Assembly: GCF_044704955.1 (NCBI RefSeq)
Contig: NC_091984.1
Coordinates: 147,126,001-147,190,000, forward strand
From: Pristiophorus japonicus
Lineage: Eukaryota
Length of the DNA: 64,000 nt
Reading direction: 5' to 3'
Made by a program: the position numbers and the translations under genes. How positions within the stretch are numbered: the stretch's first letter is position 1; the number at the start of each line of letters is the position of its first letter. This document shows, one piece after another, positions 14,963 to 29,473 of this stretch. The notes under the pieces were generated by a model. The model made no database searches. It was given only the letters and a program-made list of their open reading frames with translations, and was not told where the DNA came from.

Positions 14963-16822
14963 TAAATATAACTCTGTTTAAGTAGGGCAGGCCGAAATTA
15001 ATAACTCACTGAAACACTGCTCGAATTGTTGCATAAATTAGTGGTTTGACGAATAATGGTTTGGGTGACTTGATTTAGAAATTTTTATCATGCTGCTGAC
15101 TTTAGATCAATAAATTATTGACAGGTTTCGCTCATTGCAAAATATCAGTAACATTGCAAAATATTATCCGTTGATATTTGCTGGCACCGTCAAGGGGTCA
15201 CAATACTGAAAGATGTTGCCGAGCAACACTGTGGGTACATTCACCAGGTGGACTGCAGCGTTTGAAGAAGTGGCCCCACCCCCACCTTCTCAAGGGCAAC
15301 GAGACGGGATTCCCCATCTATTGTCCCCAATTCCGGGGTCCTCATCCTTTTATCTGTTATTTCCCACTATACTTCTGTATCCATGGCAACACCCCCACCA
15401 CCATAATCAATAGACTCAACTTATATTCTCCTAAAATCACCTGATACAATTTGCTTCTAAAAGTCTATTGTGTAACCTCAGTTCTACAGGAATACAGTTA
15501 CTTATTCCATCTCAGTTCCCTTACTGTGCTCAGGCTCTCTGCTCTGCACAGAGATTTCTGTATCCATTTCTATCTATCTATCTATCTGTCTATCTATCTC
15601 TAACAGTATCTCTCTATTTGTCTCTGTCCCTTCCTCTCTCTATACATCTCTAATTATCGCTCTGTCCCTTCCTCTCTCCAACTCTCTCGTTCCGTATGTC
15701 TCGTTTTCTCGATCTCAACAACAACTGTATTTATATAGCGCCTGTAACGCAGTAAAATGTCCCAAGGCACTTCACAGCAGTGTTATAAGACAAAACAGAT
15801 AAATTTGACACGAGCCACAAAAGGAGATGTCAGGGCAGGTGACCAAAAGCTGGGTGAGAGGTCGTTTTTATCTTTTCTTTCTCCTTCCCTCTCTTTATCT
15901 ATCAATCTCTGGCTTTTTCTCTCTCTCTCGATATGTCTCTCCCCCTCAATACACATTAACCCACAACATGCCTTAGCAATATCAAGCTGATAACCGGGTA
16001 TCTGACCAACTATCCCACACATCAAAGGCATCTGAGTCAAACAGTCCTGAATAGCGCTTCTAATGTGGATTGATTTGGAAGCCCGGGTACATATGGTGTC
16101 CATACTCCCTGCAATTTACTCTTGGATAACCCTCCACACCAGGGCGATCAATTCTCCACAGTGATCATGGGTCACAGTAAGATTACACATGGGTCCAATT
16201 CACAGGTAAGACCTTTGCAGTCATTGACCGCAATCGTTGTGTATGAGTCTCAGTATGTAGCTTCCTGTCCTGTATGGAACCACATCCTCTATAGTCACTT
16301 TCAATGGTCTATGCTGTGAACAAGGGATCACTGACATTACCTCGCTCTGACGTTTGCTACATTGTCAGAGGTGTCAAAGTGAGCTGGGGACTGTGGCTCT
16401 GGTTGCATGGTGTTTGGATGGTCCATTTTATCCTGGCTTAATATATCAAGGGAAGGTTGTGTTGTTGCTGCTTACTGATCACCTTCTCCCCCTTGTGGTC
16501 ATTGCTGCACTTTCCCCACATGGTGTTGCACTGTTGAAATCGCCGATGAGAAAAACCTGCCTTTGTGAGCGAGGCAAAGTCTGTTGACCATGTGAGCTCT
16601 GTGATCTATTTAGCACTCAAATCACTGACGCCACACAGTCTGGTGTTGTAGTAACTGCTGTGACCTTAGTCCTTTATTGTGTAACTCCAGAGTGTCTCTC
16701 AGGTGTGGTGGGCAGCCTTTTATACTCTGTCTTGTAGGTACTTTCAGCTCTCCCACCACAGCGCCCTCTGTGGCACACAATTGTAACCATACATTTAATG
16801 TACCTGGACAATACATAACATC

Positions 16823-17250
16823 TCACTCCCCCCCCAATTCCAAAAGCCTTTGCCGGTAACCTCGGCATTGTTCGTCCTGGTTGATTTGTGAGTATAAGTC
16901 CATGACCATCCACTTCACTCTTCTCCCCATGTAGAGATTATGCTTGCGATCCAGTGCAAGCATGTGGTATTTGCAGTCCTTACATGGGTGATGAAGTACA
17001 CGAGCATAACCTCCAACAGAAAGCAGGTATACATAGACAGTTCATTTGTATGGTACATATAGATGCATTGAAGAATTATAACAAAAGGTTGCAGGTACAC
17101 TGAACAGTTATTTAATCCCAGCTCCACTGGGTGAGGTACAGTGGGGCCATAGAGCCCCTTTTTGCCTGAGGTAATGGGCTGCGCTGAGACAGGGTATCGC
17201 AACTAGTGCATTGCCTCTGTTCTCACAAAGTAGTCACCTTTGCGGCTCAT
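16823..17250 (-). pseudogene. Unknown degraded Cys/His-containing ORF at the 3' end of the LTR element
   Basis: ATG at 17250. An open frame 17041-16823 (...VLHHPCKDCKYH...LLELGGE*) ends inside the PPT. The upstream part is interrupted by stops. Confidence 0.4.
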
Positions 17251-17534
17251 CTGCAGCCGCTGAACCATTACATGAATCACCTAAAATCGGAAATCGCATT
17301 AGTCCATTAGTCATGTGAGTCACAGATCCATTAACCCTTTTAATTGTACCTTGTGGTAATAACTCTTTTCATAAATCATATCCATCATTTTAAACACAGT
17401 AATCATTTCAGCTTCAAAATATTAACTTGTGTCATAAATCACGTCATCATACAAATCACATTACTCATTTAGACTCGCTCTTGCCTTACAAAAGTCTCTT
17501 TGTGGGGACTGCTAATGGTGTAAGGCCCTTTTAA

Positions 17535-18084
17535 GACTCCCGGGTTCATTTCCCTTTTAAGACGCCATCTTGTTTTTCCCACGAGGCTTCCATTGGGCAC
17601 CGCCATTTTAGATGCTCTGCTTGCCTTTCTCTGGAGAACTCTGCTGCCAACAGGGTTGCCACCATCTTGAGCTCGCTGCGCCCCTTTACATTGAAACAAC
17701 TCCGCCAACAGTTGCAGCCAATTACAGAAAAGGAGGTTCCAAGCCAAAAGAGACATAGCGTACATGAAGAAATGGTACAGAAAAGGCGTAGGTTAAACAC
17801 TCATTTTGTTGAGGAGGAACTTCCTGCAATTACTGAACCAATTGAGGATGTGAGTGGCTTGACTGCACTGCTGAGCGAGTTTGAGAAGAAAAATGTGAAT
17901 CCCGTTTCTGCTCTGTATCTATTTTGCAAGCGCAGAGGATGCCATCTGCATTTCCAAGAGGTGGAGAATTCAGAGGCTTCTGGCATGACATGTTACTTTC
18001 TTCGTGCAGTTGTGGATGGGGTTGAGTTTAAAGAAGGAATAGGTGTCAGCAAAATAAATGGCCAAGAACAATTGTGCTGAAGCC
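17535..18084 (+). pseudogene. NLS plus dsRNA-binding domain (ADAD1/ADAD2-like dsRBM) ORF inside the LTR element
   Basis: Stop-free frame 17535-18077 with QKRRRL, then NPVSALYLF...AVVDGVEFKEGIGVSK. Removing 1 nt near 18055 restores KKMAKNNCAEA, matching the dsRBM KKxAK helix. Confidence 0.8.
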
Positions 18085-18222
18085 GAAACCGCGGGACGCT
18101 TGGGTGTCCTTGATCACTCACACCTCGGAGATCTGCCCGTACCTGGAGAGCACTTCTTCCAGGGCCGGCTCGTCTGTGTCGAGATTTAGACCGCCGATGA
18201 ACAGATTTCCTTCTCCGGACCC
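18079..18222 (-). pseudogene. CIRBP: Processed CIRBP/RBM3-like RRM fragment inside the LTR element
   Basis: Reads [46 protein letters not shown], containing RNP2 and most of RNP1. The start codon is lost and there is a stop at 18118-18120. Confidence 0.85.
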
Positions 18223-20899
18223 TTTTGCGAGGTTGGTTTGCTGGGTGTTTTCCCTGCTGTATTCTAGCCTGCTGCTGCCTATCAGTTCACTCTCAACTCT
18301 CTCTCGGGATCTACCACACTTGACCGTACCCGGGAACAATAACACACCGGCCCCCGCACCGCTGCATCCACAGGAGCCGGCCTCTGCCCGCGGGCCAACG
18401 GTGCCTGCTGGAGCAGCCCGTCGAAGCCCTTCTTTCTCCTCCAGCTCGGTCGGCGCTGCTCTTTGGGAATCCGGGGGACAGCGGTTTGTGGAGGATTGAA
18501 GTCTTCCCAGCTCCCACGGACCTTCCCCATCCACCTCCTGCCGAGTAGCGTCGGCCCATCGCCTGCAATGATCTACAAAGGTAAACCGCACGTCTCGCCC
18601 CATGATATACCTGCACCTCCGCTCTGCCAAGAACAGGTATCAGTTACTTGGTGTAGGTGCACAGCTTTGCCGTGACCGGGACCATCTTGGGTCGTGCAGC
18701 TGGGTTGATCCATTGTTTATCAAAAGTTTCCTGACTCATCATCGACTGACCCGATCCAGTGTCCACTTCCATACTCACTGGGACTCCGTTAATCTTGACT
18801 TCCAAAACCACTGGGGCTGAATCGTCGGTACAAGTATACAGTCCAAACGCCTCATCTTCTTCTACCTTCTCCTCGCTGGATAGTAGATCATCTACCATCT
18901 CCTCAGCCACACCGATGAGTCAGGTTTCTTTTGCACATATGCTGAAGGTGGCCTTTCATGTGGTAGACATGGCACGTATACTCCGCAAACCTGCACCGGT
19001 GAGCCCCATGGCTTCCTCCGCAGCGCCAGCATGGTGCTACTCGATTAGGCCCCCTCGGCGGACTCTAAGTTCCAGATCCGTGCTCTCTACCCTGGGCAGA
19101 GCCATGTTGTGCAGTTTTGTCCGTGACAGGCGCTGTCCTGTGGACATGCCTGCCGATTTCGAGACTGTGTGGATCATTTGCTTGGTGCTGCAAGTCGAGG
19201 TCATAAATGCCCAGCTGATGATGATGGCTTGCTGCAGGCTGACTGTAGGTTCAGTGGATAGCAGCTTGTGAAGGAGATCCTCATGGCCAATCCCCATAAC
19301 AAAAACATCTCGCAACGCCTCTTCAAGTTGTGGACGGCACCGCGAGTCTCCAGATGTCCGCAGCATATTTGGTGACATCCTGGCCCTCAGGTCTGCAGTG
19401 GTGGTAGAATTTGTGCCTGGCCGTGAGGATGCTCTCCTTCAGTTTCAGTTGGTCATGAATAAGTTCAATCAGCTCCTCATATGACTTGTCCTTGGTGCTC
19501 GCGGGTGCCAGCAAATCCCTGACGAGACAGTAAACCTCATCGCCACAACTGGACAGCAATATCGCCTTACGCTTATCTCTCAGTGCGTTCGTGTCCCCCG
19601 TCAAGTCGTTTGCTATAAAGTAGTACACGAGCCTTTCCATAAAGGCCTCCCAATCATTACCCACTGTAAAATCCTTTAGCGAGCCCAGATTAGCCATGGT
19701 TGCGTGAAGCTCATCAGTGCCCTCATCGCCAATGTGATGTATGTAGCACTCAAATCGCTGACTCCACACAGTCTGGTGTTGATATAACTGCTGTGACCTT
19801 AGTCCTTTATTGTGTAACTCCAGAGTGTCTCTCAGGTGTGGTGGGCAGCCTTTTATACTCTTGCAGGTACTTTCAGGTCTCCCACCACAGCGCCCTCTGT
19901 GGCGCACCATTGTAACCTTACATTTAATGTACCTGGACAATACAGAACAAGCTCTTCACCTGGTGGATAGTAAACACAGACCGTTGCTACTTGCACCAGT
20001 TGACCTACAACAAATCCCCTTCTAACATGCTGTCTGATGCGCTGTCGACCCCAGTCTTTCATCACGGCCCCCAGTTTGAGAATAAAATCTGACAACTGCG
20101 ACCAGCGGCTGGTAATGTGCTCCCTTCTCCTGATCCTGGACACAAACCCAGCCAGCAGTGCTCATCCTCCATGCTCTCCATTTTACACTGAACACATTCC
20201 GGACCTGCTTCATGCTCACTGCTGCCCATTCATTGTCTCTCTCCCAGTTTACAATCCAACACTTAGCACTTATTTGTCGCTTTCTCAGGTTTTATTTTCA
20301 TTACTTCATTTGTTCTTCCGTCACAGAAATGCTACTTATTTTAATTATGCATAATTTATTGTAATTATGAACAAATATGATGTCGCGTTCCATTTGCTGG
20401 TGTAATGAAACGGCCGGTAATTTAATCCGAGCTGTTTGCACCGCACTTCCCATCAAGTTGTGGCGACGGAGCGAGAGCAGCTCCCAGTAAATTCCCAGAG
20501 TTTGTGATTCACAGCATCAGATATTCATACAACAGTACAGCAGAGAAGGAGCCATTCGGCCCATCGAGTCTGCGCTGGCTCTTACAAAGAGCAATCCAGT
20601 TGTCCCACTACCCCGCTCTTTCCCCATATCCATGCAACTTTTTCTCCTTCAAATTTTTCTCCAGTTCCCTTCACAAGTTTACCGTTGAATCTGTCTCCAC
20701 CAACCTCAGGCAGTGCATTCCCAATCCGAAGCACCCGTTGGTAAAAAAGTCTGTCCCAATGTCGCCTCTCATGTTTTGAACAAGTGTGTAACACTTACAA
20801 TGCTCCAGTCCTCTGGCACCAACCTTGTGTGTAATGCGGATTGAAAGATTGCAGCAAGCCCACTGCAATTTCTACCCTGACTTCCGTCAGCAACCTAGG

Positions 20900-22720
20900 A
20901 AGCTTCCCACCCACACCGGGTGACTCCCCCACTGTAAGTAATGCCCTCCTTTCTTACTTCCTGTTCATCTATTTTATCTCACCTGCTTAACATCCTTATT
21001 TACCAGAGTGTTGGCAAAGTCTGCTTCTTTAGTAAACAGTGATACAAGTTGCTCATTTAGTACATCAGCCATGCCTGCTGCCTCCACCAATAGATCTTCA
21101 TTTCAGTCCCTAATCGGCCCCACCGCCCCTCTGACAACCCTTTTACTGTTAATATGTCGACAGAAGACTTTGGATTTATTTATATCTCAGACGCCAATAT
21201 AATGGTGTCCTGTGGCTTTGCCCCTCTTATTCTCCTTTGTACTTCCCCTCTATACTTTTTATTATTCTGCCTGATTCTCCCTTGTATTATCAAGCTGACC
21301 TCTGTCATATGCCCCATTTTTCTGCTTCATCCTACTCTCTAACTCCTCTTCATCCCCAGGGAGATCTGGCTTTGGCTGCCGTCCCTTCCCCCTGTGGGAT
21401 TGTACATAGTCTGTACCGGGACCATCTTCTCTTTAAATGCCACCAATTTCTCCAGTATGTTTCTGACTGTCAGTCTATGACTCCAATTTATCCAGGCCAG
21501 ATCCCACCCCAATTCCCTGAAATTAGCCCAACTCTAGTTAAGTATTTGTATTATAGATTGTTCCTCTTTCGTCAAATCTAATCTGAACCTTCCTCTATAA
21601 TGATGGCTATTCCCGGGATGTTCCCCACTGTGACATGCTCCACTTAACCCACTCCATGTCCCAGGGCTAGGTCCAGCAGTGCCTCCTTGCTCGTTGGGCA
21701 GGAAATATATTGTACAAGAAAATTCTCCTGCACACACATTAAAAAGTCTTCCCCTTCTCTGCCTTTTATCCAATCACTGTCCCAGTCAATATTGGGAAGT
21801 GAAATTCTCCCATTCCCACTGCTCGACAGTACTCAGTCATTTCTGGGGGAATCTGCTCCTCTATCTCCTTCCCAATATTTGGTGGCCTGTGAAATACACC
21901 AAGTAGTGTAATAGCTACTTTATTCTTCCTTAACTCCAAACAACTAGTTTCTGTCTGTGACCCCTCGAGAACATCCTCTCTTTCCAGCATTGTAATATTT
22001 TCCTCATTCCAAACTGCCACCCATTCCCCATTCTCCATCCCCTTCCTTACCCAATACCTTCTGCATTGAAACATTCAACATCCAATCCTTCCCTTTTTTG
22101 AGCCAAGTCCCAGTTATCAGCACAAGCATTGTAATCCCACTTGTCATTTGCGATTGCAGCTCATCAAACATATTAACCACATTTTATGCAACTGCAGACA
22201 TGCACTCCAAACCCAACTTGGAATTCTTTCATAGTTGTTATGATGCCACCAATTCTGTATTATTTCTAACTCTCTCTGACTCTCCCGGTCCTCTGTTCAC
22301 AATGTTTCTACTTTTTAATACTCCTTCTTGTTGCCCAGCTCCCCAGACTAATTAGTTTAAACCCTCCCCCACAGCACTAGCGAACCTGTCCAAAAGGATA
22401 TTGGTCACAGCTCTGTTCAGTTGCAATCTGCCCAACTTGCACAGGTCCTTCCTGCCACAGAACTGGCCCCAATGTCCCAGGAATCTGAAGCACTCCCTCC
22501 TGCACCACCTCTCTAGCCACGTATTAACCTGCCATATTTCTACTCTAACTAGCTTGCGTCACTGGATCAGAGATTACTACCTTTGAGATCCTGCTACATA
22601 AATACTTCCCTTGTTCCATAAGCTCTGACTGCAAGATGTCTACCCTTTTCTGTCGCTGGTTCCGACATGGACCACTGCTTCTGGCTCTTCATCTCCCCCA
22701 TGTGCACACCCTCACCCCAC
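20900..22720 (-). mobile_element. Old degraded CR1 LINE (ORF1 end, APE, linker)
   Basis: ORF 21766-22074 contains ELRKNKVAITLLGVFHRPPN; LLDLVLG-like motif near 21670. Confidence 0.7.
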
Positions 22721-26900: not shown

Positions 26901-29473
26901 AAAAAATTTAATCTGGTTAATATAAAACCATTTAATTCTCCTAGTTAACCGGGCTGCATATACCATGCGACGAGCTTTATCAACAATATTATACGGTCCC
27001 TTGTTCCGGAGTTCAAAACTTCAACCCTGACATAGTTTTGTTCTATTATCTGGCCCCCCACCTCCCACTCCTGAGATTTACTCAGGGCCACATGTACTCG
27101 GTTACGGTGGTGTGGCATCCTGATCCCTCAGGCGCAATCCACGAACCCGTTTCTTCCCGATGGTCACCAACTTAAAACAAAAGAAACAGAGAATCTCTGG
27201 TGATTCTGCTTAAGAGCCTGAGGGGTTAATTTGTAATATGATCCTAAAATTCCTTCTACCCCAGGAGCAAATATTCTCTTCAAATTAAGAAAATCTCCAA
27301 TATTCAAAAGGTATTGCCCACTGAATTAAAACAGAGTTCACAGCTGCCTGTGAAAGGGTTAACTTCCTTTGTTTCGAAAGCCGACAAACACAGACACCAT
27401 CAATCAATGTCAACCTTCGTCCCACAGCTTGCAGCCTTTCCAGTTTAACCTCTCTGTGTGTCTACATTTAAAGTAAGCTTAAAATAAACATTCAGAAACA
27501 CAACTCTGCACACAATCGCATTTCATGTTTTTCTTCCCAGATACACATTGGTCAGAATTTTTTAAACGATACCAATTATTGATGTGAAATGCCTTATGTT
27601 CGAAACTAAAGTCTCTCCACACAATTTACACCAACCAGAATTTTATCGGCCAGAATAAAAGTCTGATTTTTAATAGGTTCATTAATTTCAGTAATTCCAA
27701 TCTTAAACTCTCCAATGCCACTTGGAAAAGGGGGAGGAGCCACAATCACATGAAGGAGTATGCCTTCCCAAAAACTTTAAACACAGAAAAACACCAGAAC
27801 AGTGAAGAAAAACATAATCTTCCCTTTTCTCCTTTTAATTGACTCATAACTATTCATTATTCCTTAAACCAGTTTCAATTTCTGATCCCCGTACACTCCA
27901 AGTGCACCTCTGATTACCTTTTAAATGTGGTGAGGGTTTCTGCCTCTTCCACCCTTTCAGGCAGTGAGTTATAGATCCCCACCACCCTCTGGGTGAAGAG
28001 ATCTTCTCTAATCCTCCCCCCTTATATGTTGTCATCCTGACGTGTGCTGTCACCATCACACCTTCTGTCGGTTTATTTCGTCACTTCTCAGTCAATAGTC
28101 TAGTCCGTCTACTTAATTCTCAATACGCGCTGGTCAATAAATGAGGACTTTCTCCTCTTTTTGTTTCTTTTCCGACTCCCACCACTTCCTTTGTGCCGCA
28201 GGTGCATCGTCTGGTTTCCAATTTAGTTTAATCTTTATTTCAATTAGTTTTCAATTTTTATCTGTTAGGTACAATGTCAGAGACCGCTCTAGTCCCAACT
28301 CGAGTTTCTCACTTCCCATGGGTAGATGTTGTCAGCTGTACATTCCTTAATTACTCGCCCTGAGTGAGACCGATACTTGCAACCCTATCCTCTTGGTTGT
28401 CAATGGTACGCCCCTTACTTACTCCTCACAATTGAGACCGATACTTGTAGCATTTACCAACTATCAATGGAAATAGGAGGTGGGTGGGGTGGCTTGACCC
28501 ATCCACCTCCACGGAGGTGTGTGGGGGGCCTGACCCATCCACCTCCATGGCACGAACCTGGTATTGCAGTACTTCCAGGAACGGTGCAGTGGCTCTAGGC
28601 CTTTTGGCTAAGAGCATTGGCGCAGAGTGATCCTTGATGTGTGCAAGGTTTTTGTGATTTGATTTGTGATTTGTTTGTGGCGTTTGTGATTTGACAAAGA
28701 ATTGGAAAGATTGGCTACGAATTAAAAAAAAAAAATTTACCAACTATCAATCGCAACATTAATCAAACACACTTTTATATTACCGATCGGTTTACCTGGG
28801 ATCTTCCACTGACTACTTGAAGTCTTGGCCAGACATGCAGATTCAGATCTCTCAGGCAGCTGACAACAGACAGATTTCTGCCCTTGTCCTAACTGTGCAT
28901 GGTAATTAAATTGTAATCACACCTTTGACATGGCCTCTATCCGCCGGTGTCCGCTGTCTGCTTGAGATACTGCCGACTACGCCAATTGAAGTGGAGTATT
29001 TAAAATAACCACTCGACACCAGGTCTGTGATCGAAGATTCAAGTAGTCTTTATTTTGCACTGATGGGGAGGTGACCTGCTCTGGGTCTAACCAGGTCACT
29101 GTCCAACGATACATAAGTTTCAACAGCTTTTTATACACTGAGAGGTACATGCTCAACATCACAATTCTGTGGTACCATTTGATTCGTTCAAAGCCTGCAT
29201 GCACAGTGGCTGATTGGTTACCTATTTTTATGCCTAGCTCGCCAAACATTCAAAGTTTGCCTGAAGTTTGTGGTTTGTACATTTGAAGCCGTTACTGCTC
29301 CTTAGACGAGCCGTTTACCAACCACATCCCGTGCTTGCGCTTCCGACATTAATTTTGAGGATTCTTTCTAGCTTCAGCCTGTCTGCGGTTTATGTGTACA
29401 TGTCCTCTCAGCCATTGCAGCTAGTTTGCAGGTTGCAAACCTTAATTCCTAAAGGATGCAATGTCCCACTTCA
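23971..29473 (-). mobile_element. Endogenous retrovirus-like element: LTRs, tRNA-Ser PBS, integrase tail, degraded env; gag-pol largely deleted
   Basis: LTRs at 23971-24463 and 28987-29473 (TGAA...TTCA). PBS TGGCGTAGTCGGCAGTAT at 28967-28984. PPT AAAAGGGGGGAC at 24464-24475. GPY integrase motif near 26990. Env-like ORF pieces 24572-26478 with a C-terminal TM segment. Confidence 0.9.
28469..28734 (+). mobile_element. U2 snRNA-derived poly(A) retroposon, copy 1
   Basis: 17-bp TSD ATTTACCAACTATCAAT at 28452-28468 and 28735-28751. U2 3' stem-loop IV sequence at 28557-28588, U2 5' sequence GGCCTTTTGGCTAAGA at 28598-28613, then an A-tail. Confidence 0.85.

Follow-up and report, generated by a model that had tools for sequence, protein, structure and literature searches.

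In the 64,000-nucleotide (nt) window of the shark Pristiophorus japonicus analysed here (NCBI RefSeq assembly GCF_044704955.1, contig NC_091984.1, positions 147,126,001 to 147,190,000 of the forward strand; all coordinates are those of the window), positions 16600-19949 are occupied by a dead non-autonomous long terminal repeat (LTR) retrotransposon, coding on the minus strand, that carries two broken retro-copied host fragments. One fragment derives from a CIRBP-like mRNA and the other, in the opposite orientation, from ADAD1, a testis and male-germline gene. The ADAD1 fragment is circularly permuted and has exon-boundary junctions, and the overall explanation that we consider probable is that the element is the fossil product of an LTR-mediated retroposition and contains the copy of a single turn of an ADAD1 circular RNA (circRNA).

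The antisense open reading frame (ORF) at 17667-18080 (137 aa), in which the earlier note had recognised a double-stranded RNA-binding domain (dsRBD), is real and has its origin in ADAD1. Among 1.84 billion representatives scanned without profiles, one strong relative emerged, an ADAD1-like protein of Rhinoraja longicauda (dsrm + A_deamin, E 7e-29), and the best elasmobranch orthologue was the ADAD1-like protein of P. japonicus (P0010). Residues 95-178 of P0010 were aligned to 17802-18053 with 95% identity over 84 aa (E 5e-54) and residues 189-203 (TLKQLRQQLQPITEK) to 17688-17732 with 100% identity over 15 aa, and the AKNNCAE of P0010 was found at 18061-18081 in a shifted frame (tblastn frames 1 and 2); residues 185-220 of Heptranchias perlo ADAD1 matched 17691-17798 (78% identity, E 3e-14). 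The native order in ADAD1 is ..AHFVEEELPAITEP..GVSKKAAKNNCAE-I-TLKQLRQQLQPITEK-(EVPxQKR..RRRLN)-AQAPED.., and the order in the window is (TT)-TLKQL..ITEK-EVPSQKR..RRRLN-THFVEEELP..AKNNCAE, which is a circular permutation. Along the plus strand, the copy consists of the tail of exon b (17686-17732; 2 nt of codon I188 and TLKQLRQQLQPITEK), the alternative cassette exon c (17733-17798; EVPSQKRHSVHEEMVQKRRRLN, 66 nt), exon a directly after exon c (17799-17969; THFVEEELPAITEP..FQEVEN) and the head of exon b (17970-18081; SEASG..GVSKK..AKNNCAE, with an extra A near 18055). Of the 396 nt that exons a, b and c comprise, 395 are present, and the copy has no sequence from beyond these exons.

Read contigs at least 85% alike, from one DNA run of the same organism and from RNA-like runs, were placed on 15300-21200. 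The native linear order is represented by a contig of RNA-like run X5 (depth 575, the depth class of the other ADAD1 contigs of that run), which passes from 18081 through an A to 17686 and has one base fewer at 18055. The outer ends of the copy, 17686 and 18081, are thus neighbours in the mRNA, with only the A of codon I188 missing, and because the host contig lacks the base at 18055, the extra A of the window can be identified as the frameshift that ends the 137-codon ORF. The inner junction, 17798|17799, joins the end of exon c (..RRRLN) to the start of exon a (THFVEE) in reversed order. Exon boundaries were deduced from isoforms: H. perlo isoform X3 is without exactly the 22-residue EVPG..RRRLN block, likewise P. 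japonicus and Rhincodon (whale shark) proteins; H. perlo isoform X4 is without exactly EELL..IASK and the 22-residue block, which is the exon set of the circle; the skips in a Hemitrygon model and in Narcine isoform X3 begin at this acceptor too, the start of exon a, and Narcine X3 also sets the a|b boundary at ..FQEVGN|SGVS... With these boundaries each of the joints a|b, b|c and c|a is seamless and spliced, and the exon lengths (110 + 22 codons) sum to 396 nt, the size of the observed unit, by which the joints of the reads either go back or skip. Both sides of 17798|17799 would therefore be exon ends and the junction a back-splice junction. Since exon c leads at its end back into the start of exon a, we infer as the simplest template a 396-nt three-exon ADAD1 circRNA (a-b-c) that was copied exactly one turn. 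The chance that the outer ends of independent breaks coincide within one base is ~1% by simple reasoning (not by computation), and chance would even more rarely place an inner junction on exon ends at both of its sides. A 139-nt contig of run X5 (17680-17818, depth 6, 7 mismatches) was also observed to cross 17798|17799. As 396 is a multiple of three, the frame crosses the putative back-splice junction and the 137-codon ORF exists. A break in helix alpha-2, the permutation and the frameshift leave the dsRBD without its KKxAK part; the ORF was not detected by Pfam dsrm even at E 1, a PDB sequence search returned only PKR dsRBD1 (E 0.22), and no similar-sized homologue was found among 5.8 billion proteins, in a length-limited search that says little. 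A literature search found no report of an ADAD1 circRNA.

The extent of the foreign sequence was delineated from the contigs. Summed depth in the DNA run was ~150-260 on the flanks, 1e5-3.5e5 on the LTRs, gag and protease and 3e4-7e4 on 16876-17663; it was 2,903 on 17664-17860, 755 on 17861-18057, 5,484 on 18058-18254 and 18,032 on 18255-18451. Variant sites of the backbone were each represented by 29-102 contigs (29-75 per listed site in 16836-17676), no variant site was listed in 17664-18254, and 17 variant contigs were found at 18295. The high-copy signal stops near 17676 and resumes at ~18435-18452, and the foreign part is ~17677-18440 only. The host copy replaces part of the element ORFs, backbone homology stopping at ~18440, just after the protease, and resuming at 17676. 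In the read contigs the backbone outnumbers this cassette about a thousandfold, and the suggestion that it belongs to a Gypsy family with accessory genes is for that reason unsupported. Neither a poly(A) nor a target-site duplication (TSD) of its own, either of which had been put forward as the mark of a later insertion into a dead element, was found for the cassette, and it is not a LINE-type (long interspersed nuclear element) insertion, because poly(A) is missing from it and its longest A/T run is 5. The 3' internal region (16836-17676, minus strand) is non-coding and the family's own. It holds the ORF of unknown identity ending at the polypurine tract (PPT) that had previously been counted as cargo; no Pfam match was obtained for it on either strand and, being as highly repeated as the LTRs, it is element backbone. 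Other copies of the family join this region to the LTR (contig joint 19917->16850).

The CIRBP-like piece is in the sense orientation of the element, with a 5' end that is complete or nearly so and a truncated 3' end. Its coding part (18079-18225, minus strand) runs from the former start codon position through RNP2 and a TGA at 18120-18118 to RNP1 (RGFGF). Positions 18225-18121 match residues 1-36 of human CIRBP (PDB 1x5s, E 9.6e-8) and RBM3 (9e-6), which bears out the CIRBP-like RNA recognition motif (RRM) piece proposed from the letters alone; Pfam RRM_1 was matched over positions 1-28. Past the TGA, a second part is collinear with CIRBP 42-55 (RNP1) and ends at 18079, so that the RRM, with its in-frame TGA after codon 36, ends after RNP1 at ~52 of ~80 residues. 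The piece is intron-less, with RNP1 following directly on RNP2 in the same arrangement as in abundant mRNA contigs; the host CIRBP gene presumably has an intron between them. The adjoining GC-rich stretch (18226-18440, minus strand, upper edge +/- ~30 nt), of low to moderate copy number, was read as the 5' untranslated region (UTR) of the CIRBP-like mRNA. The small RNA-like runs X5 and X7 had zero depth on the unique flanks and depths of 212,758 and 33,947, respectively, on 18058-18254. These runs cover the CIRBP-like coding part alone, and one of them diverges from the window at 18213, so that the donor may have been a paralogue with weaker expression, or drift may have altered the UTR. No Pfam match was obtained at 18285-18572, and the 173-aa frame running through the protease tail, UTR and CIRBP piece had no similar-sized homologue among the 5.8 billion proteins, where the limit on length again means that the search says little.

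At the joint between the two pieces, the ADAD1 and CIRBP homologies overlap by GAA (18079-18081), and the microhomology would extend to TGTGCTGAA if contigs without the 396-nt unit are ancestral. Two such contigs, one near the window and one ~15% diverged, join 17676/17678 directly to 18073 onward (the short side of these joints is just 21 letters) and contain the CIRBP piece without the 396-nt unit, with TGTGCTGAA preceding the CIRBP sequence. The CIRBP bin is deeper than the ADAD1 bin, which agrees with a history in which CIRBP would have been captured first. Between the backbone and the other end of the ADAD1 copy lies a 9-nt filler, tgcgcccct (17677-17685), which matches neither ADAD1 nor, visibly, the backbone, and 4 of whose 9 positions equal TGTGCTGAA at the opposite end of the insert. 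A 337-nt contig in which ADAD1 17841-17885 is joined to CIRBP 18064-18321 (16 mismatches, 15 gap positions and a 178-nt deletion) is a further, independently decayed copy of the chimeric joint, and recurrence of the cassette is supported by other contigs that have the same ADAD1/CIRBP junction and their own differences. Between the host ADAD1 transcript contig and the window, 6 of 186 positions differ (3.2%), about half of the LTR-LTR distance given below, which is the value to be anticipated were the capture about as old as the integration of this copy.

The ends of the element were examined together with its target site. Direct repeats at 16600-16820 and 19733-19949, the sole notable internal repeat in 15500-21000, form the 3' LTR (221 bp) and the 5' LTR (217 bp), both on the minus strand and with TG..CA ends. 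They are identical at 204 of 217 aligned positions (94.0%) and differ by 4 transitions, 9 transversions and one 4-nt indel, corresponding to a Kimura two-parameter (K2P) distance of 0.062. No further copy of the LTR or of the cassette was found within the window, the sequence of which is without any N. The TSD, AGCTC, was read off the sequence at 16595-16599 and at 19950-19954, and a single copy of it is kept in the empty-site contig described below. A primer binding site (PBS)-like sequence, TGGCGATGAGGGCAC (19717-19731, minus strand), begins 1 nt inside the 5' LTR, and the PPT, GGGGGGGGAGTGAGA (16821-16835, minus strand), abuts the 3' LTR. The first 11 nt of the PBS would fit the 3' end of tRNA-Ser(GCT) with one CpG-type change; a tRNA gene scan of the 64-kb window found none. 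The two LTRs, PBS, PPT and exact 5-bp duplication claimed in the earlier note are thus all present in the sequence and, together with a frame-broken coding capacity for gag and a retropepsin, identify an LTR retrotransposon.

Gag, with an ATG at 19697, occupies two frames of 19040-19697 (minus strand) and was delineated from translations and from neighbours in a protein language-model atlas, which include Retrotrans_gag and Ty3_capsid clusters (score 0.90-0.95); no Pfam or PDB match was obtained for it. It is followed within 18441-19064 (minus strand) by two zinc knuckles (~19040-18930), a protease with the motif DTGSG at 18763-18749 and a tail, IIAGDGPTLLGRRW (~18570-18500), all interrupted by a stop and frame shifts. 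The protease was matched by the Pfam families gag-asp_proteas (E 9.5e-6), Asp_protease_2 (E 2.9e-5) and RVP (0.01), and its neighbours in the atlas are retropepsins of the RVP_2 type, and a PDB sequence search with gag and protease gave nothing useful. The succession of gag, zinc knuckles and protease from 19697 to ~18490 that had been reported is therefore supported, the tail being traced to ~18500. The stretch is readable only with at least 4 frame changes and contains several stops; therefore this copy is dead. Reverse transcriptase (RT), RNase H and integrase (IN) are absent from the element, and host-derived sequence stands where they would be expected, in keeping with its earlier designation as non-autonomous. 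The backbone is probably Ty3/Gypsy-like, of which the atlas neighbours of gag and protease are weak hints. Contig joints at 17711/18892, 18861/19191 and 17885/18064 point to several more internal deletion derivatives of the family, in one of which the 3' region is joined straight to the N-terminal part of the protease with 7 other letters between. In run X6, from organism B, contigs at least 85% alike to the LTR, gag, protease and 3' region were placed on 16482-20027, and the LTR family appears to be common to the two species; no contig of X6 fell on 17861-18254, within the cassette, which, this being a small run, is weak evidence.

A contig of the DNA run joins 16594 to 19950 and skips 3355 nt, equal to the element plus one copy of AGCTC, and so represents an empty site; together with the TSD it agrees with the claim that both ends come from one integration. 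The flanks are a decayed LINE endonuclease on the minus strand, with ..VCVYYPPGE.. upstream and ..FLIGDFNS.. downstream (weak Pfam support, Exo_endo_phos E 0.09). They were joined in silico, with the element removed, for translation only. The two LINE parts proved to be collinear, but their frames are one base apart, so that the claimed restoration of the LINE frame is no more than approximate. In the DNA run, the depth of the empty-site contig was 63, that of a copy-specific contig (18232-18418, one difference) 82 and that of the flanks ~190. Taken alone, these depths fit a heterozygous insertion, which conflicts with the 6% divergence of the LTRs. An insertion polymorphism was set aside, as this divergence indicates an old insertion and a paralogous uninterrupted LINE copy is simpler; given the diverged LTRs, the empty site is more likely such a paralogue than an allele. 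An assembly chimera was rejected, as both the inner junction and the joint of ADAD1 with CIRBP are spanned by independent contigs, and a contig agrees with 18232-18418 apart from one difference. Beyond the element, 15694-15890 exceeds the rest of the region by far in summed depth, with 324,231 in the DNA run and high values in each of the four runs. Its loose ends on both sides run into A-rich and CAACAACAAC-type sequence; this is probably a very abundant SINE-like (short interspersed nuclear element) repeat. Another repeat (summed depth ~40,000 in the DNA run, also found in the RNA-like runs) lies at 20422-20815, just past the LINE flank. No Rfam family reached its gathering score in the window, and at 28452-28751 there was no U2 match at E <=0.1, only a chance match to Prion_pknot (E 0.0013).

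The following course of events would account for these features. A high-copy LTR family with gag and protease, probably Ty3/Gypsy-like, would have given rise to a non-autonomous derivative in which the region from the end of the protease to the non-coding 3' part (RT, RNase H and IN) was swapped for copies of host RNA through template switching by RT. Because the CIRBP piece is in sense orientation, nearly complete at its 5' end and truncated at its 3' end, RT may have switched during minus-strand synthesis onto a co-packaged CIRBP-like mRNA and run to its 5' end. The ADAD1 circle would then have been entered and left at the same nucleotide, inside codon I188, with entry through 3-9 nt of microhomology (GAA / TGTGCTGAA) to the end of the CIRBP piece. 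If the copies without the 396-nt unit are ancestral, the ..GGCTTCAGCACA at the tip of an elongating plus strand could have annealed to UGUGCUGAA of the circle, so that synthesis went around it a single time before coming back. Such plus-strand synthesis on the circle would explain the antisense orientation, the single turn and the insertion point, the orientation being alternatively explicable by the capture of a complementary DNA (cDNA). Arrest after one turn could be due to removal of the copied template by RNase H or to the enzyme meeting its own product. With LTRs, PBS and PPT kept, the chimera could be mobilised in trans, and such mobilisation is likely; this copy would have landed in the LINE fragment with a 5-bp duplication and then decayed. 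No protein function is expected of the captured pieces, as neither encodes a whole domain. Since chimeric antisense transcripts are present in the same RNA-like sample that expresses ADAD1, it is conceivable that these transcripts, 396 nt of which are antisense to the ADAD1 dsRBD exons, pair with the mRNA or circRNA of that gene and feed small-RNA or editing pathways, although a regulatory consequence of this kind is very improbable.

Three other explanations were weighed against the one-turn circRNA copy. An origin of the permuted ADAD1 sequence without a circle, through repetition of exons in a host gene or transcript (exon duplication, trans-splicing) or through two successive template switches between linear ADAD1 RNAs, has in its favour that junctions out of linear order also have other sources (Dong et al., 2016, PMC4897178) and that ..LN|THFVEE resembles the native ..LNAAHFVEE, making a microhomology switch at TTAAAC conceivable. 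However, such an origin would leave to coincidence an inner junction at inferred exon boundaries on both sides, outer ends on the same mRNA nucleotide within a 396-nt unit and a unit length equal to the summed exon lengths, and only one dsRBD, with no exon repeated, is seen in the P. japonicus protein; we regard this origin as unlikely. Patching of a dead element after a DNA break with stray cDNA fragments by end joining, other copies having arisen by segmental duplication, would suit two fragments in opposite orientations with short overlaps and a 9-nt filler at their joints. It is at odds with the several diverged versions of the cassette suggested by the contigs (without the 396-nt unit, ~15% diverged or with the 178-nt deletion), because of which a small family fits better than a single duplication, against which the 17 variant contigs at 18295 also point, and with an ADAD1 divergence from the host transcript that is no smaller than half the LTR divergence, so that the ADAD1 piece is not younger than the insertion. 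This patching is likewise unlikely. Far less credible than either is a working vector or set of accessory genes carrying functional RNA-binding modules (RRM + dsRBD, for example as a suppressor of host RNA defence), close to the earlier note's picture of a vector that packages and moves host RNA-binding modules. The 137-codon ORF is indeed open across the ADAD1 piece, both donors are RNA-binding proteins and the family is transcribed in the RNA-like runs, but the idea fails because neither module is whole: the RRM is stopped by its TGA and ends after RNP1, and the dsRBD is cut in helix alpha-2, permuted, frame-shifted before KKxAK and invisible to Pfam dsrm. The ORF is open merely since the circle comprises 132 codons and is little decayed; it is antisense to the element and has no similar-sized counterpart among the 5.8 billion proteins, gag and protease are broken, and the supposed third ORF is not cargo.

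Several points nevertheless weigh against the retroposition of a one-turn circRNA copy. Its copy-number argument is built on summed contig depths, which are not copy numbers, and the exon boundaries come from predicted isoforms of other elasmobranchs rather than from the ADAD1 locus of the host. The simplest model, a template switch during minus-strand synthesis, does not predict an antisense ADAD1 piece, an explanation is wanting for the 9 nt at 17677-17685, and no second copy of the cassette with a different TSD was seen. The contig at 17680-17818 could equally be a transcript of an element copy as a circRNA back-splice read. Finally, with RT, RNase H and IN missing, membership of the Ty3/Gypsy superfamily is unproven.

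The kind of event is already known, and the present variant is unusually clean. LTR-mediated retroposition has been described in fly, mosquito, zebrafish, chicken and mammals, with retrocopies that replace part of the LTR element ORFs, microsimilarity at the joints (median 6 bp) and at times 2-26 bp of filler, chimeras from several parental genes, and products that act as non-autonomous elements; the word 'circular' is absent from that paper (Tan et al., 2016, PMC5131818). As in those chimeras, and in maize Bs1, yeast Ty1 cDNA chimeras and HERV-K/FAM8A1, intron-less host copies are found here inside a discontinuous LTR element, with partly replaced ORFs, no poly(A), more than one parental gene and the capacity to act non-autonomously; the GAA overlap and the 9-nt filler at the ends of the ADAD1 copy may be comparable to the microsimilarity and filler of those chimeras. 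The present case differs in that one template would be circular, copied exactly one turn and antisense to the element, and in that the host is a shark, a group outside the work of Tan et al. CircRNA-derived pseudogenes have been defined by a reversed exon junction, with few terminal adenosines and LTR-rich flanks, their mechanism being called mysterious (Dong et al., 2016, PMC4897178), and it has been suggested in a 2017 review (PMC5408686) that their route might be LTR-mediated. A reversed exon junction, the exons of the circle only, no poly(A) and a nearby LTR are shared with these mouse cases. There, however, the LTR link is a statistical enrichment in the flanks, whereas here the copy lies inside a defined LTR element with both switch points readable, and it would be a complete single turn opened at one nucleotide. 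On this reading the locus is an LTR-mediated retroposition chimera and a circRNA-derived pseudogene at once, the link being seen at base resolution. Like trans-mobilised elements (ETn/MusD and MaLR/MERVL in mouse; LARD and TRIM in plants), the element has kept LTRs, PBS and PPT, lacks RT and IN and has a backbone in common with a high-copy family; unlike them, it has kept a broken gag and protease, its internal filler is identifiable host RNA and the amplification of this derivative appears small. In retroviral oncogene transduction by copy-choice recombination, host mRNA likewise replaces pol through RT switches at short homologies to give a helper-dependent product, but here no read-through fusion transcript is needed and the captured pieces are small and non-functional.

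The interest of the locus lies in the one-turn circRNA copy and not in a working RNA-binding cargo. How circRNAs return into genomes is still unexplained, and this locus combines a defined LTR element, two switch points at base resolution and what we read as a one-turn copy with the back-splice junction of three spliced exons. It would turn a vague association with LTRs into a testable model, in which the RT of an LTR element changes template to a circRNA, packaged or close by, and has to leave it once a round is complete. For the annotation of genomes it carries the warning that a circle whose length preserves the frame can by accident yield an ORF like that of the 137-codon 'dsRBD protein', and it would extend the phenomenon of circRNA-derived pseudogenes from mammals to cartilaginous fish.

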